Part shown: in pieces, positions 9,729 through 23,800 of the stretch
Numbering within the stretch: position 1 is the first letter of the stretch
How the letters are laid out: every line of letters begins with the position of its first letter
NCBI RefSeq assembly: GCF_040938485.1
Contig: NW_027272389.1
Location: forward strand, 496,001 to 560,000
Reading direction: 5' to 3'
Origin: Diadema antillarum
Taxonomy: Eukaryota
DNA length: 64,000 nt
Made by a program: the position numbers and the translations under genes
Notes under the pieces: model-generated
The model's input: only the letters and a program-made list of their open reading frames with translations
Told to the model about the DNA's origin: nothing
Databases searched by the model: none

Positions 9729-10993
9729 TATATATATATATATTTAAAATATAGATATATACGTTTATATATCAAACCAGTTTCTTCTGCCAATCTTTGA
9801 TATGGGAGGCATAACTACTGGAAGCATGACTGTATACATACACTACATACACCAGAAAGCATGTACACCTTCACCACAAAAAGGCAGTTTAGGTGAGCTA
9901 TTGAGGAGTATATGTTAAGTTTCCTTAACATGTCTTAATAAATATGAATGCTGCTCCTACAAGTAAACTTTTCTATCATTTTGGATATCTCATTGACAAA
10001 TTCGGTAACACCAGAGGTACCTTGGTCGGGTTGATAAGTGTGTGTGTGTCTGTGTTATATTTGTGAATAGACAAGCTGTTGTGTCATTATTACGACTTAT
10101 GCAAATATTGATTTGCACTTAATTATCTTTCAGTTGAAGGCTCTTGATGTATAAAGAGATAGAACAGAAGCGAAGGGAGCGAGGAAGGGAGAGAGAAAAG
10201 AGGGAGTGAAATAAGAGATAAATAGCAAGTTTCAAGTTTATGTCACATCTTTAAAGAGAAATACAGTATAAACCAAAAGGTACTACATGCAAATCACATA
10301 TCGAAGTTTTACACAAAAGGTATGGTAATAAGGTCAGATCTGACACGGGACGGGAAAAAAAAATCATAGCAGATGTGGAGGATTAGTAAAAGCCATTGAC
10401 ATAATATCAAGGCTACTCCCCCTTTTTACTGCTCTTGCTACATTTTGCTACAAACATAAACAAATAAAAACAAACTATTTAAGTTACCACGACAACAACA
10501 AACTATACACGAACGAACAACAGGCATTCAGTAAACATTATAATCTTACAGTATATTGCATATTATTATTTCTGTTGATTAAAGCAAAAAAAGATCAAAA
10601 CAGATAGGCAGCAGAAAGGGAAAGAAAAGAGGACTGGGTGTTATTTTCATGGTTTTGAGAGCTCAGAAAAATACTCCTTGTGATGAATATTATTTCGGAT
10701 TATTACCGTTTCCATTACCACAGCAGAAACCGCAAAGCTCTCGCCGTGGTATACAGGTGATTATTAACGAGGATTTTGTTTTTCTCTCCCTCTCGCTCCG
10801 ACCCCGCTCGTCCGTGGAAGCATTGAGCCAAGACCTTTCCGGTTTGTGCGAGTTTGAGAAACTTCTATGCAGCACGTGTTGTATACTTGATAAATCATAT
10901 CTGGTTTGAAATGCGGTACGTCTTTCATTCTCGACTTTACCGAGTAAATCTCTTTTAAAGGCAACTCTGGTAAAGCTTGACTACAGAGATGAC

Positions 10994-11480: not shown

Positions 11481-13215
11481 CCTGATTATAATACGTACGC
11501 TCTCATGATAATCCGGACCACCGACGTAGAGATGTGTTTGTGTATTACTTTCATCCAGTTCCAGGGACTAACCAACCTGCTACCGTCACGAGGGCATAAT
11601 CCAATCAGACGTGTTTCCTCTCGTATCAACAGCCAATCAGAACTCGCAGGACGGTGTCTGAAAGAAAAACAAAAGCGTGTCGCCCAAAGTGTCGCCCAAT
11701 CAGCACGCGCGCATGTTATGCCATCAAAGCCAAATATTTACATTTCGCGGGGAAACTGGAGATGTTATTTATGCCGAGTTTTTGGCTAGTAACCCACAGT
11801 TTGGCAAGTGTGTAGCATTGTGACCTACACCCAAACTACACTGACCCCGATCACAGAAACGGCGTTATTTCAGTTGAAAGTTCCTATACAACCACGATAA
11901 ACCGATGATAACCATATAAGCAGGTAAGAGACTAATTCTGGAACAAAACTTCAAAGAAGCCTGTTGGAGGAGAGGTGTGAAAACAGACTTGTGTGTCAGA
12001 GGTAAGGCGACAGTCGCAACTATACAATGTATAATGTTTAATTACTACTTTTATGTATAGCCTATATGTGTCTTTAAAGTAAAATCACATTGAATTGATT
12101 TGCAATATAAACTTTTGAATTAAAAAAGCTGGTCAATTCATTTCCAGTTTGATTTTTGTTTTCATCCATGTCTGCGGTATTCTGATAGTGAAGCTTTACT
12201 TAACGCAGGTAAGCATTCATTGTCTAAAGTCTCAAAAATATGTCTCCGCTCAGATGGTTTTTTCTGTTACTTTGTTTGCTTTTCTAAAGAAGTTTTTCGT
12301 CATTATCTATTGCAGTGTCTCAGTGATAAGATATAATTGCCATTTCACTTCTTCTAAAGCTAACTTTCTCTTTCCGGGATCCTTAAAAGGTCTTGAAAAA
12401 ACCCCAGAAAGGATTGTTCATTTGGGAACCGTAATAAGGTCAGCTACTCTTCATCAAACTCAAACAATGTCAAAAATGAATCAATCGTTAGAGCGCGGAC
12501 ATATTACAGTAAAGACTCGGATCGGATTAACTTGTTTCGGCATTATGCGTGAAAGTAAGTATATCATCGCCTCTGCTCACGATTGACATTCAGTTAATAT
12601 TGGCGTTCAGTTTCTAATCATTGTTGTTGATTTCGACATTGTATTCACAGTATATTTGAGGGTAGTACACATCTGAAACTCTTTAATGTGACAACGGCAG
12701 AAATGATCGACAAGAAGCGCGTTGACAACTAGAGGACGGAATTTTGCATAATAAATATGTTAATTTGATGTAAGTATTTGACACCACTCTGCGACTGATG
12801 GACACAAGCGCAGTCCTTTATTGAGGAAAGGTGCTCAGACCATTTGAACCACCATCTCATAATGCCATCGAAATTGAGCATCGACAGGTTGTCAATGATA
12901 ATGAAGTGGTTTAACAAACGAAAACTTGTTACGCAAGCTTTGTTACGGGTCCATGTGCCAATTTCCCCCGAAATGACCTTCCCCTTTTCTCGTTCCTCAC
13001 ATCACTGCTGTTGTACATGACCTTGTCAGGTCGATCGTCTGGTCTGACAGGCACGATCAAGTCAAACGATCCTGGCCCTGTGCCTCAAACACACTCCTTC
13101 TGTCTTCCTTCGTCCTACCAACAGGTCGTATTTTGTATGGATGCCCCTTCCCTTCCTACCAACAGGTGTAAGGGTTTCTGACTTGGTATCGATCTGAGAG
13201 CGTGGCGGCACGAGA

Positions 13216-13476
13216 ATGCATGCGCACATCATCGCGCGCTCCCCGCTCTGGCGATTCGGCCACGTCCAGCGCGGCATTCAGCCCGACCCATCGCCAGCCC
13301 GACTTCGAGCCATGGAGGACAGATTCGTGCTCGACTGCATCTCCGTGGAGAAACTGCGATACAAGTGGTCATCCGACATCATCCCGAGGTACGATGCCCT
13401 CGACGATCCCTACGCCCGACACTATTTTCAGTCGCCCATGGTAAGAGGCGTCATCACCAAGACGTTAGGGAGAGAG
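13216..13476 (+). CDS. SPMAP1/C17orf98 (DUF4542)-like paralog A, exon 1; alternative start at 13312; downstream exons unresolved
   Basis: MEDRFVLDCISV...IPRYDALDDPYARHYFQSP aligns with LEKDFLLDCIAI...IPGYNAQKDKHVRMYF at 22186; phase-0 donor GAG|GTGAGT at a similar position. Confidence 0.75.
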
Positions 13477-13485
13477 GTGAGTTCA

Positions 13486-13517
<32 letters not shown>

Positions 13518-13978
13518 ACCTTCTCCTCTGTTCTCTCTATCTCTCGATGATGTCGGTCTCGGAAAGATAATTGACGATTGTTTGAAAAAAAGAAGAAAAT
13601 AACAGATAAAAACGAGAGTAGTTGAACATTTTCCACACGCGTTCTCATAAGATGCGCTTCGTTGCTCTATAAGCTATACCAGCACGATTGTATGTAATTA
13701 AAACCTGTGACGTTATTCTCTTTTTCGAAAGGAATACCTTGCACCTCATACACTATGCTTTGATGGGTGCATAATTATTATGTCTACTCTTAGAGTTTGC
13801 AAGTAATAATCATAGGCCCTATTCTGCTTTTGCGTGTCCTCTTTATTTCCTTGTCGAACTCACAATATCAGCTGACAGAAGAATATTTATACAAAGTACG
13901 ACCAAAAGGAGGATAAGAATATCTCGCGGTTTTGCAACAGTGGCCTTTGAATTTCCGTTTTCTTTGAATCCACGGGAC

Positions 13979-13991
13979 GTTCCATAGTAAC
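13979..13991. promoter_or_regulatory. Degenerate X-box-like motif GTTCCATAGTAAC in intron 1 of paralog A
   Basis: 13-bp variant of the RFX consensus. Confidence 0.25.
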
Positions 13992-16900
13992 ATAGGAGCG
14001 ACGAGATAATTATGCTAAGTTCCTTCGATGTAACATTGTCACTATTTTACGGGTCGTCTATTACTAACCACATCACTGTCAGCTACAAAGGACATAACGT
14101 ATATTTTTGTCCGATAATGAAAGATAATACTTCAGTAAAAGAAAGGGCATAATTTTGATAAGCTTTACCACATTCAAAGGCAGAATGTATACCATGTCTT
14201 TTATATATTTAGATAGATAGATATATAGATGAATGAGTGAATGAATAAAAACAAAAAATAATCAATCCATCAATCAATCAGTCGGTCAGTGATTAGTAGG
14301 TATAGGTAGACAGCTATAGAGTTTGTGTGGAAATGTAGTTTTTTAAATATTTAATTGCTCTATTGTACAATATGCAGGAAATAAAAAGGGTACCTCAATG
14401 TAAGACATCACTGACAAAAATGGAGTGACCCTCTCTTGCAGCAGGTAGAATTTCTATAGAAAGAATAGAGAAAAAAAGGCAGATTCAAAATGAAATCCAT
14501 TCGTGTACTCTGCTGTGAGTCTGAGTCGACTGCTGTCATATTTGATTATGTCATTTTATTCCGCATCTCTTTGGGTTTCCATCCAAACAAAAAATATAAA
14601 CCTAGGTTGATGATTGCATTCTTGTTCTTATGGGGAATTTGAGATGCATCACTTGGTCATGTTTACGGTCGCAGGCACTGGAAAAAAAATAGCCATTACC
14701 AAATTGCAGAGAAAAGAAAAGTTAGAGAAAGCAGTAAATCATTGTAAGATGCACAAACTCCTGAAAGCCATTTTCATTCTCTCGCAAAAAGAAAAACAAA
14801 ACAGAAATAAAAATTCGAGTTTGAAGAAGGTGCCAGATGAACTTGAATGAATAATCAGTTACTTAACTATGTCGTACTTATATCATTAATTGCAGGTTCC
14901 GTCCAAAACCAGGTCAGACAAAACAAAGAAAAACACACAAAACCCCCTTCTTCATGACTTATGTGTATGCATGCATGATTTTATGTTTGTGTGGAGAGAT
15001 TCTGCTTCAATATCCGAAATGCAAATCTCGCAGGAGTGCACAGAGTCGCTGACAGCACTTTAAGTGTAATAAATTTAACGCAATATAATTTTCAATCTTG
15101 TTATTGTTATTGTTGTTGTTGTTGGACGTAAAGTCACTCGACATAATTTGTTAGGCATTAGAAATTCCATAATAGGTGATGGTTAAGAACAAAAAAAAAA
15201 TCGCTTCACTTTTTCTCTGACTTTATGAAAATATCAAACAATGAATATGTAAAAAAGACAAATGACAGATAAAAGGAAGTAAAGAAGGAATGGTATTATC
15301 ATCAGGTTCGCATGTTACACGCATCTGCGAACACAATCATGATGTGCATGTACTAATTATGGCAACTGTTCTTGACAACGGCAACCACTGAAAGTAACGT
15401 TTGGTGCCTGACAGTATGAAGTCTAACAAATTTAGCCCGACGAGTGCAAGTGCAACTGATGAATCGTGATGAAGGTTATATTATGCATCCTAGTATTATA
15501 GGGTCATTATTTATGATAACTCTTTGGTGGCACGGTGCAAATAAAAATCGACTGATGTTTCGTTTTGCTATCTCAAAAGAAGTCGAATGTATGAATTAAG
15601 TAAGAGTAACTACTGACACGAGCATGTCGCGAGAGAAAGACCGAGCAAGTCAGAAACTCAAGGTTATCGCCTATTCTCTTGTCTGTCTACGACAGAAACA
15701 AAATGAAGGGGAAGAAATTGATCCGCTTTCTTTTATTGTGCTCGTCACAATGGAGCGATCGATGACGAACATTGTTACCCCTTCCATGTTGTGTTTTTAT
15801 GTCATCCGCTGGCTGTCGCCCCGCGCGTGAAGAATCAATGTACCAGAACCCCTTTTCCGTATAAACAGAGAGCAGGTCACGCATTCAAATAATGTGACAG
15901 ATCTTCATGATCTTACGGCATGAACAGACTTCCTATATAAAAGTTATAGATAGAGTATCTCTCTATCATGTTCGGTCTACAAAAGAGTTCGCACTCATGT
16001 TAAGGACTTTGTTCAAGATGTTTTATCACCTCCTTCCTATCTCCTAGAGGATTAACAATGTAAACATATTTACCTTCCTCTTGTTTGCCAATGCATTAAG
16101 GAGACAATGGAATTGGGCCTGAGACATGTTACCAAGTGAAAGTTCTGAAGGGGGCATGAATGGTTACTACAATGGGTACCGTAAGAGGAGAAACACTGAA
16201 GTTAATCCTTCAGTTAACACTCAGAGGGCCTTAATTACGGCTTTTTCGAGTGATATTTACCGAGCCACTTCAATAATTACTTTCTCTCAACCAAGCAGAG
16301 TTTCAGTGGTGCTCAGAGGGAAAATTCCTGCTTACGAGACTTATGAGACAATATTGAAATATGGTGTAGTGTTGACAACTACAACAGTTTTTTTTAAAAT
16401 ATAATTACATTAAATCATAGTTCCTTTAGTATAGGCCTATACTCATTTTTTTTTTTAAATTGAAGGCCATTCGAGACTCCCCTGTCCCTGCACTCGCACT
16501 TGTCCATCCTCCTTTTTTGTGAGTAATACCTGAGAATAGTTTTTGGTCGTTTTGTCAGAAAAGGCCTGTTCCCTCGTTAAATATAATTACGTATGCAGGT
16601 TGTCTATTGCGACTGCCCCTGCAACGTGGTCATGTAATGAAAGTGAAATGCAATAAATGAACATTTGTTTTCTTCCTCGAAAATTGTATTCTAATCGGTG
16701 TTATTGTAATTTCTTTTGTACATTTTATTTTAAAAAAGAAACATCGCAGAAATAATTTGAATTTGAAAAAAAATGACGTCAATTCAAGTCTTTTTTCTCA
16801 AATCAATATCTCCTCTATTCGTATTTATCTTTCTCTTTCTCTCTTTCTTCTTTTTTTTTCTTCTTCTTCGATTTCAACTTATAGCATGCTCACTATACTC

Positions 16901-17546
16901 ATTTTCTTCTCTCTCTCTCCTACACTGTTTCTTCTTTACATATCTCTCAAAGGCCTACATAGTTTTAATGTCTGTAAATGTAACTATGATACGATAAGAA
17001 TTTTATACGTCATTACGGTATAATGAATTTTATGGAATGATTACATTTTTGAATGCGCCAGCATTTTGAACTAATGAACAATATGTAAATGACTGAACTT
17101 ATGTATCTTAATCGATGTTTATGTTTTTTTTTTCTTACGAGGACTCCTGCTTTCCTTTTCTTTGTCTCTCTCGATCTCCCACCCTCATTTCTGCATCTCT
17201 AACCCCCTATTAGTAACTCTGTCTATCTTCTCCTTCTCCCTTCGCTGAGGCTTCCTCTCGAGTCCATATCCTGGTTAAATATGATATGTTTATGATGGAA
17301 ATGCTTTTTGTAATTTTATCATTCTTTTATCCGTATTGTTTTGTATCATATTTTATTGTAACATCGTGCAATTCAGTCACTGACTGCAATGCGATTGAAA
17401 TAAAACCATTATTGAATTGAGTTGAATTGAATTGACAACACTGATTTTCATATCTATCATACCATATTCCAATTGACTAGAATATATACAAATATATAGT
17501 ATATTCAGTATCGTCCCTATATATTCTATAAAACCATGTTAATCAT

Positions 17547-17561
17547 GTTGCCATTAGCAAG
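17547..17561. promoter_or_regulatory. Degenerate X-box-like motif GTTGCCATTAGCAAG upstream of paralog B
   Basis: GTTGCCAT half-site about 35-50 bp before ATG 17596. Confidence 0.3.
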
Positions 17562-17595
17562 AGATTACTGACCTTTTAGTTTATTTATCAAAACA

Positions 17596-17811
17596 ATGAC
17601 GACATCACTCTCCCCGACTCAGAATCTACCGGAGCCATGGAGGATAGACCCACTCCGACCGGTCCTAACGGCCACGCATCGACGTAACAGTCGATCACCG
17701 AACCGATGCTCTCTCTCGGCCCAACAACGACTGCCGCGGAGTTCGTCGCTAGACACCCTGAGAAGGCGGCGAAACGACTTCAAGGTTGACAGCGTGTATG
17801 CTACAAATCAG
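17596..17811 (+). CDS. SPMAP1-like paralog B, exon 1
   Basis: ORF ending ...RRRRNDFKVDSVYATNQ|GT; the phase-0 donor joins 18570 in frame; DFKVD matches the FxLD motif. Confidence 0.6.
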
Positions 17812-18569
17812 GTACAATACATGACCAGTGCATAAAAAGATGATAGCATGGTAATGTAGTCTGTAATTATAATTCTATCCTGTTATGTAATAGCCAAGTA
17901 TCAGTCAGTGATTGGATAATGACGGGCGGGAAGAGGCTTTGTTAACATAGCCTGCATGTGGGCTCAATATTCGTACTGCTGTGGAAAGTGGCTACAACGG
18001 AAAATTAGAGTTCTCCTGTTGGGACAAACCAACAAACATTGATCACAGTTTTTGGCAAGAAATAATACGAAATGTTTTGACCGCGTTGAATTGGTTTGAA
18101 TGTTACTTCGGCATGCACTGGGAGGGTTATGCGTCCTTATAGACCATGTAGACTTTGTCTCGGGACTTCTAACATTCCACAAAGTACTTTTGACATTTGT
18201 GGGAAACATTATACCATCCCACATGTCTGCATATACTTGTGTGTTTTTAACATTGTTTAAACTGGCCCAAAACGAGACTCACCACGTACAAAAGTGGGTA
18301 CAATATAGAAGTGCTTGTGCATCTGAGAAAACAACTATTAGAAATTAGTACTATTAGTATAGTACTAATTTAGACTGACATCAAATGGCTTTAATCGACA
18401 ATTAGACTGATGGATTGATAACCTGTTGACGATAATCAGATAATGGATTAGTTCATATCTACATTATAATCACCTATCTTTCCCCCTCCCTCTCTCCCTC
18501 CCTCTTTGTCTGTGTATCCGTCTGTCTGTCTGTTTGTCTCTCTCTCTCTCTCTCTCTTCATCGCGAAAG

Positions 18570-18727
18570 GTGACAGAGAGGAAACCGATGTTTAAACCGT
18601 ACGATGCCCTCCACGACAAGCACGCGGCGGACTATTTTGAGAGGAAAGGAGTTAAAGAGACGCTAGGCGTGACGATGACGTCACCAAGGTACCATAGAGC
18701 TAGATCACCACCAGTACCTACCAAAAG
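18570..18727 (+). CDS. SPMAP1-like paralog B, exon 2
   Basis: Long CT tract plus AG acceptor; KPYDALHDKHAADYFERKGVKETL matches the family PxYxAxxDxHAxxYF motif; donor AG|GTTCGT is phase 2 (end uncertain). Confidence 0.7.
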
Positions 18728-19009
18728 GTTCGTGCTTTTGCCCTGCTGTAACTCACATTATTTTTCTTCAAAAGGAGTCCATTCATATAGCAAAGTACTA
18801 GTAGGGCCTACCCTATGATAGACCTGCTCGGTTTGGAGTACTGTTTTTTTTTTCAGTCATATGGGGGGGGGGGGGGGGGGGCTTCAGTATATGTTTGTTT
18901 GTTTGTTTGTTTGTTTGTTTGCTCATTTTCCATCTGAGAAGATGGCTGGATAGCCCATATTCAGCTACGTTAAGCTGGTCTTCCATGGGGTCCAGTTGGA
19001 TGTGAGGTG

Positions 19010-19140
19010 GGAACACTTCACCGGGTTAAACACCCTGCTCTTTGCGATGAATGAATGAAGCGGGATCTTTTACGTGCATGAGTTGTTACTCTCTCATACA
19101 CGGGACCTCCAGTTTATGTCCTATCCGAGTATATGACCAA
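19010..19140. mobile_element. Fragment resembling the central domain of invertebrate tRNA-derived SINEs
   Basis: ccctgctctttgcgatg...gggatcttttacgtgca...gggacctccagtttatgtcctatccgag, recalled similarity only; needs a Dfam search. Confidence 0.35.
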
Positions 19141-19485
19141 TAACTGTAGGTAATTTATGCACTGACATAACGATGCACCTAACTCATTGCACAACCAACT
19201 GAATCGTCTTTTCTTCTTATTTTGGAAGATCCCCAGTATTATGGCCGACATAAGTTACAGTGTTTTACATCCTATATTCATAGCTTCGCTCTGGTATAGG
19301 GGGCGTGCTTCGATCTCTATTCGATTTCGAAAGCGTGTAGATGATGTCTTTTGCAGATTACTGTGCAGTTCCGTATTTTACTCAACTCCTGTCAGGGAGA
19401 AAATTAGGAAAGTATAAAATCGACAAAAATCCATCGATGAATGCCCCCCCCCCCTCTTTCTTATACAATTTCTGCGTTCTTACAG

Positions 19486-19540
19486 GTCTTGCCATTTGAT
19501 AAATCAATTCGAAAGTTATCAACTGCCGAGGATAACGTGA
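19486..19540 (+). CDS. Paralog B candidate terminal exon (SCHLINQFESYQLPRIT*); full model 142 aa
   Basis: Strong pyrimidine tract plus CAG; phase 2 matches the 18727 donor; total CDS 429 nt. Confidence 0.5.
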
Positions 19541-19749
19541 GCCTGTAACTGCCGACAAACCTAGGGAAGTTATTTTGAAGGATTTTATTTGACTTTTTTT
19601 TCACAAGTCATCCACGATCGTTACGCAAATAGATTTGGTGAAAATACACGCACGACAGAGAAAGCTACATTACAATGGCAATGAGAAGATGGACTCATAT
19701 TACAGGTTATAAGAACAATAGCGATCGTGACTGTAATGGCAGTGGTGTT

Positions 19750-20040
19750 GAAAATGACAATTATGATAATAATACTAGTAGTAATAAGAATATTAGCAAC
19801 AATAGTAATTGTAATGATAATAGTAGTAGGGATAATGATGGTGAATATGATAATAATGATAATGTACAGTGAAATGGTAAAGCTGATAATGAAAATAAGA
19901 TAGTAGTAATATTGATAACAACTTTTGGTGTAGTATTGTCACAACAACAACAACTACTACTACTACTGCTTCTACTTCTACTACTACAAATACTACTATA
20001 ACTATAATGTACTACAACTAGTAGCAGCAGTGATGTAGTA
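19750..20040. repeat. Degenerate trinucleotide low-complexity tract (AAT/AGT/CAA/CTA)
   Basis: Direct inspection. Confidence 0.85.
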
Positions 20041-20689
20041 TTGCTATTTTCATGTGACAAATTCAAAAATATCATTAAAACACTATGAATTATACCAAAC
20101 GGCATACATCACACTTCACTTCCGACACTCTCAGGCGCGTCGCCCTTCTACGAAGTATTTCAATGAGGCTGTCGCTTTTTGATGCACATTCTTATGTAAG
20201 TTCTTTTTTTATTTTTATTTGATTTGGAATCGATTTTTTTTTCTGCATTCCTTTTCCATACGAGAATATAACACAAAGTCAATTGATCGAAGTTATTGAG
20301 TAATAGAAATTTGAATCTAACAGTGATTGACTTAAATGTAGGCCCTACAAAATTGTTTTTCCTGAGAATATAAAATGAAAACTAGCAGGTGTCATTTTAT
20401 GCATATTGAAACTTTTTAACATATTAAGATTTTCATGCATATGAAAACAGTATTGTGATTTAAAAATACCGCTTAATTTTTTCAACTATACACCCCTGGA
20501 ATATTATTTCATCTCAACGAATCAGTCAGTTTCTACAACGAAATTTCATAGATCAGTATACAAATGAAAATAATTATCTTTTCTCAGCTTGGTTTGATTA
20601 CAGTGCAAATTCTTGTCAAGGCATAAGCGTGCTACTTTATTACATTCTGATTATACAAATTCATGAAATTCTTCCGTCGAGATGTTTTC

Positions 20690-20862
20690 ATTGCAACTGA
20701 TTGACAAATTGCCCTACATCGACGTAAATAAGCACTGAATTGATCAGTGTTTTAGTAGTAGCCATGAAAAAAAAAATTATCATGGCTATATACTACTAAA
20801 ACACTGATCAATTCAGTGCTTATTATACGTCGATGTAGGGCAATTTGTCAATCAGTTGCAAT
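20690..20862. repeat. 173-bp near-perfect palindrome
   Basis: Arms of about 80 bp (attgcaactgattgacaaattgccc... / ...gggcaatttgtcaatcagttgcaat); one arm recurs at 50135. Confidence 0.9.
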
Positions 20863-21028
20863 TCTGATTATATTTATCTATTTTATATATCTATTGGTTT
20901 TATTCAAACAAGGTAGCGATTGTGACTAGAGCGATAATAATATACAACACGAGAACATTAATATTTCTATAATTATTATCTTTGAAGGCTTCCGTGGTTG
21001 TAGAACGTTGGGTGCTAGGCTCAATTAA

Positions 21029-21266
21029 CGGCGCGCCACATATTCTTTCGTGGTCATGTATGTGGCCCTGAAAAGGGCCTACCCAGTCAAGACGTTTCGG
21101 CAGGCATGTTCTCGCTTGTTTATTCTGTTTTATATGAAATTTTTGTACTTCAGCAAATAATATTATTCCCTTGAGAACGGCGAGAATATGCTTGCCAAAA
21201 CGTCGGGACAGGGTAGGCCCTTTTCAGGGCCACATACATGACCAAGAAAGAATATGTGGCCCACCG
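21029..21266. mobile_element. TTAA-flanked MITE with long TIRs
   Basis: TTAA at 21025-21028 and 21267-21270; arms of about 90 bp including a perfect 33-bp inverted repeat. Confidence 0.8.
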
Positions 21267-21719
21267 TTAAGTCTTCTAAAACCCAATATTTCTATACCTC
21301 AACAACCAAATATGAATAAACAGACCACAACAACGACAAATAACCACACAAGCAAAGTTGTTCATGTCAGAACATGTACACCAGAGTGATGTGTCAGTGC
21401 ACATTAAAAATGAAAAAAAGTTTCTATCTCGTGTATTTTGTTTTTTTTTAAACATGCAAACTATATTTTCTTCACAACCGTAAAACGCTGAATGGAAATG
21501 AAGAGTCACTACATTCACCGTTGAAGCTGACAAAATATTTTATTTACAGGCAGTAGGCCTACACGTGTTTCACGAAAAACTGTAAATTTTGAACTGCAAC
21601 GCAGCCTACAAGTATACCAACCAAACGAAAACGTATAGAATATCTTCCTGTTGTTTCTATCAATACAGGGTGATAGATAGATAAAAAGATAGATGGGCAG
21701 ATGTAATAGAGAGAATATA

Positions 21720-21890
21720 NNNNNNNNNNNNNNNNNNNNNNNNNNNNNNNNNNNNNNNNNNNNNNNNNNNNNNNNNNNNNNNNNNNNNNNNNNNNNNNNN
21801 NNNNNNNNNNNNNNNNNNNNNNNNNNNNNNNNNNNNNNNNNNNNNNNNNNNNNNNNNNNNNNNNNNNNNNNNNNNNNNNNNNNNNNNNNN
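21720..21890. other. Assembly gap / masked run (171 N)
   Basis: N run following GATA-rich sequence. Confidence 1.
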
Positions 21891-21988
21891 TGAGAAAGCG
21901 ATTAACAGCATGCAGCAACAAAGCCATATAGCCGCCGAGCCCACGCCGAGCGAGCAGCAGACAGCAAGGCCGAGCGATTCATTTACCC

Positions 21989-22001
21989 GTTGCTAGGCAA
22001 C
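21989..22001. promoter_or_regulatory. RFX X-box GTTGCTAGGCAAC (reverse complement GTTGCCTAGCAAC)
   Basis: Canonical 13-bp RFX site in a CpG-rich region 185 bp upstream of the SPMAP1 ATG. Confidence 0.75.
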
Positions 22002-22185
22002 TCCAGTCGGCTTTCCCAGCCGCTTGGTAGCGCGTGTGCGGTCGATACGAGAATAACTTCCGCGTTGCGATCGTAAACATACCTCGTAACAAGCGTGTTC
22101 ACGGAGAGCCGAACAAGGGGTTAGTGGTGCGGTTGAAATAGATAATTCATTTTTGTGGGATATTGCAATCATCAAATTGTGAAAA

Positions 22186-22440
22186 ATGCCTGACAGTGCT
22201 GCTAAGAAATCCAAGAAGGTACCAAGGGGACCACCGACGCCTTCCGTGGAAGAGCTGGAAACTCTAGAGAAGGATTTCTTGCTAGATTGCATAGCGATAG
22301 ACTGCATAGCGAAGGACTACTCGATGGCTCAGCCGAAGCTCGGCCCAGCGATTCCAGGCTACAACGCACAGAAGGATAAGCATGTCAGAATGTACTTTGG
22401 ACGTGAGGGTGTAACAACTACGCTTAGAAAGACTGGACAG
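22186..22440 (+). CDS. SPMAP1: Sperm microtubule-associated protein 1 (C17orf98, DUF4542) orthologue, exon 1 of 3
   Basis: LEKDFLLDCIA...PKLGPAIPGYNAQKDKHVRMYF...LRKTGQ matches recalled human LEKGFILDGVA...[22 protein letters not shown]...LRKTDQ; phase-0 donor CAG|GTAAAA. Confidence 0.9.
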
Positions 22441-22953
22441 GTAAAAGATATCGTCGAGCTTGCGCAAATAGCGGAAATATTTGCTTGCAAAAAGCAAATA
22501 GTAGTTACAAATGCTGTTAAGTAAAGTAATAGTGTGACAATTATATGACTTTTTTTTCATAGTAGTATAGATTAGAAACTATTAAGTGTAATTTTGTTCA
22601 ACCCCTTTGATCTACATTAATTCAACAAAATGACTTTTGAAACTTGTGCAAATCCAAACCATTATCGATAGGCAAGCACAAGGATGTAATCACGCAAGTG
22701 TTGATGTCATGCCAACCATTGATTCTACCATTTAATTAACACACACCGCATCATGTACAATGTAAGATAGAGATTGTTACATGTGTACAGTCTACGAGAG
22801 ACAGATGAGATATATAGCAACCTGAGGAATCAATCAACTGATGCTATATCTTGCAACCAATTGCTACAATGACTGCCATCTTGTGAAAATTGTGGCTCAG
22901 TTGGCCGGAGAAAGGGATGAACACATCCTGCTAACTAGTCAAACTCTTCTTTC

Positions 22954-22967
22954 ATTGCCATGGCAAC
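22954..22967. promoter_or_regulatory. X-box-like motif ATTGCCATGGCAAC in SPMAP1 intron 1
   Basis: 13/14 match to the RFX palindrome. Confidence 0.5.
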
Positions 22968-23057
22968 ATATATACCATATATTCATATAGTTTTAAGTGT
23001 GGAAGGTCCAGATGTTCAACTATTTGTGGTTTTTTTTTTTTTCCCCCCGCTATGCAG

Positions 23058-23166
23058 GACAAGGGTGGTACCTCAATCGACGGACCTGTCATTGACCGTT
23101 TCATCGAATCCGGGGCGGGGTACAAATACCTCCACGCACGCAATCAAGCACCAGGCGCTGCCAAGG
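23058..23166 (+). CDS. SPMAP1: SPMAP1 exon 2 (DKGGTSIDGPVIDRF...GYKYLHARN)
   Basis: CAG acceptor; G|GTGAGT donor phase 1; similar to human DHGGTGRDGWIVDY...QRYLNRRN. Confidence 0.9.
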
Positions 23167-23639
23167 GTGAGTTTGGCATTTCAGTCCATCATAAGCTGTG
23201 ATGAGAATGTTGGGATCCTAGTGTAGGGCATACAACAACTTGTATGATTTATCATTGTTGGTGCAGATCATTAACCGTACACTCATTTCTGAATAGTTGA
23301 AATTATCATAACATGACTAGATAAGGAACTTGGATCCAGGGTGTTTTCTGGATGAGGTGAAAATTTTTGCAAACTCTTGTATAGTTGAGCAGAAAAATGT
23401 TATATGTATGACAATAGGATATGGCAGATGGCCCTCACTTTTAAGTGTTCAAATATATGCGTGCATATGAATATAGAGAGATAAAATTATTATCTATGTA
23501 CAGATTTGTATATCTACAATCTATCAAACTGCTCAATATCTGAGTGGAACTGTGTTTGTACAGTGTAACATGTTTTGCCCACAGATCATGTCTACATGTG
23601 TTCATTTAATTAAATTGTGTTTTAATATTGCCTATCCAG

Positions 23640-23800
23640 CTGGACACTGCAAAGATCAAGTAAATGGACACGCCCAGTTCATGCAGGATGTCAAACCAAT
23701 CTTCGGATACCATGGCCACTTTGGCTACCGGAGGAACAGCCCCTGGTTACGGAAGATGCCTTCTCCCTTTGGCGTAGATGTCCGATCTCCAACACACTGA
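23640..23800 (+). CDS. SPMAP1: SPMAP1 exon 3 (terminal; total 174 aa)
   Basis: VKPIFGYHGHFGYRRNSPWLR...PSPFG matches human [21 protein letters not shown]...SVFG; phases consistent. Confidence 0.9.

Follow-up and report, generated by a model that had tools for sequence, protein, structure and literature searches.

The stretch of DNA analysed here, 64,000 nucleotides (nt) of the sea urchin Diadema antillarum (contig NW_027272389.1, positions 496,001 to 560,000; "the window" in the following), contains a cluster of exons related to SPMAP1, the protein also named C17orf98. Our overall reading, in which we place high confidence, is that this cluster consists of two genes arranged head to tail on the + strand. 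These are AB, the orthologue of Strongylocentrotus purpuratus LOC755292, and C, an SPMAP1 gene provided with an X-box promoter of its own; an axonemal role is proposed for the AB product by analogy. The original prediction had counted three tandem units, A, B and C. A and B, however, are collinear with LOC755292 and share its exon sizes and phases, which points to one gene containing both, and to a cluster of two neighbouring genes.

Exons of the AB and C genes

Exons of the window were searched one by one with hmmscan against Pfam, the cut-off for PF15075 being 27 bits, and the S. purpuratus LOC755292 protein served as a stand-in for whole-protein analyses. The window is AT-rich, intron-rich animal DNA, in which the motif F-x-L-D ... 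P-x-Y-D/N-A-x-x-D-x-H-x-x-x-Y-F is found at three places on the + strand, designated A, B and C. The exons of all three match a single Pfam family, PF15075 (SPMAP1-like), in keeping with their earlier assignment to the SPMAP1/DUF4542 type. The HMMER check proposed along with that assignment came out well for A and only in part for B: the A open reading frame (ORF; 13216-13476) scores 32.2 bits over profile positions 1-57, while the second piece of B (18570-18728) stays below the cut-off with 22.4 bits (E 1.8e-4, profile 30-59) and its first piece (17596-17811) was not matched at all. Within the window, tblastn relates A to C at E 3e-7 and B to C at E 3e-4 to 9e-4. Given the hmmscan and tblastn scores, the likeness of A, B and C is genuine and clearly exceeds what chance would give. 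When the whole assembly was searched in six frames, PF15075 matches were confined to this cluster and to a second copy of it on another contig, referred to as C600. By tblastn, neither exon 2 nor exon 3 of C has a further copy in the window, and none was found in the genome outside the two cluster copies, which bears out the claim that the upstream part lacks the GYRRN C-terminus.

Three exons of AB were identified. Exon 1 (13216-13476, +; 87 codons) carries the start codon, an H-x-H...SPL head and N-module 1, and ends at a phase-0 donor, GTGAGT, at 13477. Exon 2 (17623-17811, +; 63 codons) lies between the acceptor cag/AAT and the donor GTACAA at 17812 and encodes the linker (LS.R.R.P...) and the first half of N-module 2. 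The second half (PYDALHDKHAADYF...) is encoded, together with a short basic tail, by exon 3 (18570-18727, +), which ends at a phase-2 donor (AG/GT). An additional intron had been predicted inside the B module and is indeed present, between ...FKVDSVYATNQ and VTERKPMFKPYDAL. The predicted AB protein of ~205-235 residues begins with a short H-x-H...SPL head, after which the SPMAP1 N-terminal module occurs twice in tandem, each copy made up of a Pro-rich leader, the F-x-L-D helix, the I-P-x-Y-D/N-A-x-x-D-x-H-x-x-x-Y-F loop and a short helix pair.

Comparison by exon (blastp/tblastn) showed exon 1 to be 72% identical to residues 1-85 of LOC755292, the exon starting at 17623 to be 58% identical to residues 89-150, and exon 3 to be 56% identical to residues 151-186. 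Exon 3 also resembles module 2 of the proteins from sea cucumber, brittle star, acorn worm and S. purpuratus, at 53-56% identity. As the 87 + 63 codons of the window end exactly at LOC755292 residue 150, there is no indel at the junctions. The S. purpuratus protein also starts with MHxHxI..SPLW, followed by two modules joined by a linker, and in its gene (locus L012; AAGJ06000006.1:225362-247537, reversed) the first two exons again measure 261 + 189 nt with phase-0 introns, module 2 is interrupted at the same place (STNQ/VT; TNQ/VT in the window) and the last donor is again in phase 2. The tail after module 2 is not alignable between the two urchins. The acceptor in front of 17623 is good (ctctccccgactcag/AAT) and in phase with the phase-0 donor GAG/GTGAGT at 13477. 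Because the exon begins at 17623, after this conserved cag acceptor and collinear with LOC755292, the ATG at 17596, formerly taken as the start of B, falls inside intron 1. In the AB head, MHAHIIARSPLW corresponds in the alignment to MHHHVISHSPLW and to the SPL column that is invariant in the two-module family, and the AB linker SLSAQQRLPRS aligns with the family linker L-S-x-R-x-R-x-P. Two N-modules (32.2 and 22.4 bits by exon), linker, head and exon structure thus all place AB with the LOC755292-type proteins. The GYRRN C-terminal part expected of an SPMAP1 orthologue is missing, and for this reason we regard AB as SPMAP1-like, not as SPMAP1.

Downstream of exon 3, alignment of S. purpuratus with the window DNA is restricted to coding exons, and the tails of homologues do not align. 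Nine acceptors or more would fit the phase-2 donor of AB. The segment 19486-19540 (+), which had been put forward as the last exon of B with an end at 19540, is one of these candidates; no homologue tail aligns with it and we regard it as unsupported. The AB 3' region contains one AATAAA site, at 21315. An assembly gap (run of N, 21720-21890) lies in the intergenic DNA between AB and C, 2,992 nt after the last identified AB exon, 296 nt before the C ATG and 99 nt before the X-box described below, and it could hide the last AB exon. None of the reading frames found crosses the gap, and neither flank gave a coding match. Its estimated length is about right, because the spacing agrees, by coordinates only, with that in C600 (window 19531-21900, 2369 nt; C600 46499-48861, 2362 nt; ~7 nt apart). 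The ORF 16126-16404 (GYYNGYRKRRNT) was considered as a lost GYRRN-like C-terminal exon of A and rejected: it has no PF15075 match, tblastn against C exon 3 gave E 10 at best, no phase-compatible acceptor was found after its upstream stop, and its motif carries four non-synonymous changes in C600.

Gene C has three exons with 174 codons. Exon 1 (22186-22440, +) encodes the N-module (71.1 bits, profile 1-58), exon 2 (23058-23166, +; 23058-23168 searched) ends at a phase-1 donor and scores 24.3 bits over profile 60-89, and exon 3 (23640-23800, +; 23642-23797 searched) holds the GYRRN part and the stop codon (61.6 bits, profile 92-134). The whole PF15075 profile, including F-G-Y-R-R-N, is covered in this way. 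Exon 1 is 78% identical to Strongylocentrotus SPMAP1, and exons 2 and 3 are 95-97% and 90% identical to that of S. purpuratus, respectively. To judge by its sequence, C (22186-23800) is a complete canonical SPMAP1 orthologue, as had been predicted.

The two-module family and its structural relatives

In a search of 1.84 billion protein representatives with a profile of the shared module, 213 proteins were matched at E <= 1e-3; the names given here come from the best 150 of these 213, not every one of which could be named. The best matches are proteins of 165-265 amino acids (aa) with two modules (three in the nemertean Lineus) and without GYRRN, the closest among the matches listed being S. 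purpuratus LOC755292 (XP_011672745.1, 214 aa). In the sequences fetched, GYRRN is absent from the unmerged models, which make up about 23 of the 27 two-module entries. Two-module members among the matches listed come from echinoderms (brittle star, starfish, sea cucumbers, crinoids), from other deuterostomes (acorn worm, three amphioxus species, four tunicates) and from protostomes (four molluscs, one nemertean). Deuterostome proteins of AB-like architecture include Acanthaster LOC110976175, Amphiura XP_072019992.1, Ptychodera XP_070535947.1, Branchiostoma LOC109487895 and Ciona LOC100178654 and LOC100183978, tunicates having two paralogues; protostome examples are Crassostrea LOC105329545, Patella LOC126821388 and Lineus LOC135498338, the last with its three modules. 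The family alignment shows one architecture throughout, with a head containing the invariant S-P-L, module 1, the L-S-x-R-x-R-x-P linker, module 2 and a short tail.

A tree was calculated from 42 module sequences, with B of the window omitted since its module is split by an intron. The modules of SPMAP1 proper, including that of C, form one group (99/98), and so do eleven module-2 sequences from molluscs, amphioxus, acorn worm and echinoderms (98/95); A of the window pairs with module 1 of S. purpuratus (96/89). The grouping of module 2 across molluscs and deuterostomes indicates that the two-module layout is older than the protostome-deuterostome split. Given the same layout in other phyla, AB is an ancient SPMAP1 paralogue and not a new expansion. 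Accordingly, the suggestion of an undescribed expansion does not hold as regards lineage specificity, AB being an orthologue of LOC755292 with RefSeq counterparts in other phyla. It does hold in so far as the paper library searched yielded no literature on the two-module family or on LOC755292. The literature searched mentions DUF4542 once, for the gene set of the Nematostella apical organ, in which C17orf98 appears together with its counterpart from S. purpuratus. All named members carry the label "uncharacterized" or "hypothetical" protein, and PF15075 already covers every one of them, so that the alternative of A and B being annotated members of known families applies in part: RefSeq entries exist and match PF15075, under the name "uncharacterized protein". 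The orthologue pair of AB and SPMAP1 is therefore already contained in public annotation, and the upstream gene is a conserved, unstudied two-module branch of the SPMAP1 family. No vertebrate two-module protein was named among the best 150 of the 213 matches, which, as not all could be named, is an indication only.

In Acanthaster the two-module gene lies 463 nt upstream of SPMAP1, as a neighbour in the same order as here, while the oyster gene, unlike AB, has no PF15075/SPMAP1-like neighbour within 10 kb. In S. purpuratus LOC755292 is directly upstream of SPMAP1, and the distance from AB exon 3 to the SPMAP1 ATG is 0.4 kb as against 3.5 kb in Diadema. An ARM/TIR gene follows SPMAP1 on the opposite strand in both urchins (L012:22003-22176; window 35315-49962, -), and local gene order is thus conserved between them.

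The likeness to SPMAP1/C17orf98 (PF15075; bovine 8otz_N, also 9fqr) consists of the N-module (profile 1-60), which is present twice in AB, and of the whole profile in C. AB differs from SPMAP1 in that profile 60-134, including GYRRN, is missing, in its separate grouping in the tree, and in its modules, where the stretch from the F-x-L-D helix to the I-P-x-Y motif is shorter by ~6 residues. Bovine C17orf98 (SPMAP1) is the only relative among solved structures. It accounts for seven chains in 8OTZ and 9FQR, two entries for sperm doublet microtubules, and its residues 10-70 are where both module profiles align. SPMAP1 has been listed among the sperm-specific microtubule-associated proteins outside the doublet (PMC11779644, Extended Data Fig. 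3; PMC13406575). An AlphaFold model of the LOC755292 protein, calculated with the family alignment, predicts a 22-residue helix, an 18-residue loop with I-P-x-Y-D-A and a short helix pair, this succession occurring twice, and no globular fold (pLDDT 64.9, pTM 0.22). A search of the ESM Atlas returned no usable match.

Two bird hypothetical proteins, KAK2528993.1 (Columba livia) and GAB0197181.1 (Grus japonensis), contain 4 to 11 tandem repeats that match solely the module core Y-N-x-L-x-D-x-H-x-x-x-Y. The former has no Pfam match and the latter a sub-threshold PF15075 match of 26.1 bits. They could represent tandemly repeated exons or a distant motif family.

A second copy of the cluster and the extent of the two genes

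The AB-C cluster is present twice in the 1.75-Gb assembly, at window 12700-23800 and at C600:37988-51678. The two copies are 81-91% identical over long blocks and 93-100% over exons, or 98-100% over exons when the clusters are compared as a whole; introns show 50-80% identity with indels of ~300 nt, and from ~13525, a few tens of bases past the exon 1 donor, identity drops to 50-70%. C600 probably represents either the other haplotype, deeply diverged and assembled separately, or a recent duplicate. Starting 10 nt after the exon 1 donor, a run of C that passes into a (CA)n microsatellite (window 13486-13520) differs in length between the copies.

Over 606 coding nt of AB there are 13 differences between window and C600, 12 of them synonymous and at third codon positions. 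Some 3.7 synonymous differences were expected, and 12 were reached in 0 out of 50,000 resamplings (P < 2e-5). Exon 1 contributes 3 synonymous and no non-synonymous differences, exon 2 contributes 8 synonymous (all at third codon positions) and 1 non-synonymous; for C the figures are 6 and 0. The start codon and all five AB splice sites are identical in the two copies. The inner ATG at 17637 is GTG in C600, a change that is synonymous in the AB frame, and this argues against a frame starting there. On this pattern of substitutions AB is under purifying selection and appears to be a working gene.

Two other explanations of the upstream exons have to be weighed against these data. A and B might be independent genes that, with C, form a tandem row of three, A and B each being a truncated single-module SPMAP1 paralogue; every unit does have an ATG-initiated open frame (13216 and 17596 for A and B) and a PF15075-type module. 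Yet none of the homologues has anything corresponding to the segment 17596-17622, at the end of which lies the conserved acceptor; for A, neither a terminal exon nor a stop was found, and its read-through region is rich in indels between the two copies; and more than 20 two-module proteins from six phyla, the S. purpuratus orthologue included, are collinear with A plus B without an indel at the junction. We therefore consider three separate genes to be very improbable. Even less credit, practically none, is given to the view that A and B are decaying relics, i.e. pseudogene pieces of old SPMAP1 duplicates. Such relics would be consistent with modules that have diverged to 31-34% identity with C, with the missing C-terminal part and with a score of B alone below the Pfam cut-off, but they are at odds with the 12 to 1 ratio of synonymous to non-synonymous differences and its P value, with open frames and intact splice sites in two copies, and with orthologues kept across phyla.

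As regards the boundary between AB and C, a palindromic RFX X-box, GTTGCTAGGCAAC, is located at 21989-22001, 197 nt before the C ATG (start to start). No other strict X-box occurs in the 64 kb of the window, for which 0.54 were expected. The X-box has the same 197-nt offset in C600, and in S. purpuratus, where the surrounding DNA no longer aligns, the SPMAP1 ATG is preceded by the identical 13-mer at a distance of 256 nt. Since the 286 nt flanking the X-box occur only twice in the genome, in the two cluster copies, it does not reside on a transposon. By its sequence C thus has the conserved X-box near the predicted transcription start that characterizes RFX-regulated ciliary genes. Near-palindromic X-box-like sites occur elsewhere in the window at 2974-2987 (GTTGCCATGACAAC), 10483-10496 (GTTACCACGACAAC) and 34191-34204 (GTTACCGCAACAAC), a number close to chance for the loose pattern.

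Contigs L014, L015 and L018 (~1 kb, from runs SRR317986xx) are spliced SPMAP1 cDNAs without an AB exon, and in S. purpuratus their 5' ends map 58-105 nt past the first base of the X-box. In the starfish Acanthaster the two-module gene and SPMAP1 are annotated separately on the same strand across the 463 nt mentioned above; no X-box was found between them. In Diadema an in-frame TGA (22180-22182) is placed one codon before the C ATG and is present in C600 as well. On the basis of this TGA, the donor phases, the conserved X-box, the cDNA contigs and the starfish annotation we conclude that AB and C are two transcription units, a read-through isoform being possible.

Several observations weigh against the reading given here. 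The last exon and the stop codon of AB were not found, and the AB exon junctions rest on homology and splice-site consensus. Searches of ~2.7 kb upstream of AB here, and of 6 kb in S. purpuratus, detected no X-box. As regards structure, LOC755292 gave no match with PDB chains, and Foldseek against the PDB returned no row at E <= 0.001, the best being 8otz_O (E 0.7) and 8otz_N (E 2.9). Finally, RefSeq models join both genes in S. purpuratus (XP_030828456.1, 401 aa), Apostichopus (isoform X1, in which module 2 is joined to SPMAP1 exon 2), Anneissia and Branchiostoma (amphioxus LOC109474278). Such fused models in four deuterostome lineages speak for A, B and C being one transcription unit, of which one isoform at least would be a protein of three modules ending in the SPMAP1 C-terminus. 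The conserved phase-2 donor of AB exon 3, for which no terminal exon was identified, fits this as well, and an AG at 22195-22196 inside C exon 1 would preserve the frame. The pyrimidine tract of that acceptor is poor, however, and a junction of the S. purpuratus type is blocked in both copies by the TGA preceding the C ATG. The conserved AB donor, being in phase 2, does not suit C exon 2, to which only a phase-0 donor could be joined; furthermore the SPMAP1 cDNA contigs begin after the X-box and lack AB exons, and starfish annotation has two genes. The S. purpuratus model, which fuses LOC755292 to SPMAP1 (L012 6001-16176), runs from AB exon 3 through the SPMAP1 5' untranslated region (5'UTR), the same 5'UTR that carries the stop codon here. 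It looks over-merged, because the cDNA-like contigs start inside the supposed intron, after the conserved X-box. Taken together, a single transcription unit appears unlikely.

Elsewhere in the window, a GC-rich tandem array (29804-31619) contains 5.5 copies of a 333-nt unit with 91% matches, and its ORFs repeat a Pro-rich peptide (GPIRTPPHPPPPPPP...).

Proposed role in cilia and sperm

With AB and C read as two genes, C would encode canonical SPMAP1 and would be expressed in cilia or sperm under RFX control from its own X-box promoter. The AB protein may be a non-globular, extended axonemal microtubule-associated protein like bovine SPMAP1. This role is proposed by analogy with the bovine protein, whose position on the outer surface of sperm doublets has been resolved (PDB 8OTZ). 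Each of the two AB modules might dock on the tubulin lattice, which would make the protein a two-footprint binder. More tentatively, and with somewhat less than even confidence, we suggest that the two-module protein is an unstudied ancient bilaterian component of outer axonemal doublets, encoded directly upstream of SPMAP1 in echinoderms and occasionally produced as a three-module read-through form. Merged models suggest that a two-module gene lies directly upstream of SPMAP1 in amphioxus too.

For annotation, the gain is that two supposed genes are merged into one and that the SPMAP1 exon borders are corrected; it is also suggested that the current 401-aa RefSeq model of S. purpuratus over-merges two genes. 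For the biology of cilia and sperm, AB adds a conserved, unstudied protein related to one that has been mapped structurally on sperm microtubules, and it does so in sea urchins, whose sperm is a classic axoneme system. As the N-terminal module is repeated in AB and stands there alone, it is a candidate for a self-standing lattice-binding unit. If the proposed role is true, the two-module protein could explain external densities that are still unassigned in the sperm doublets of sea urchins.

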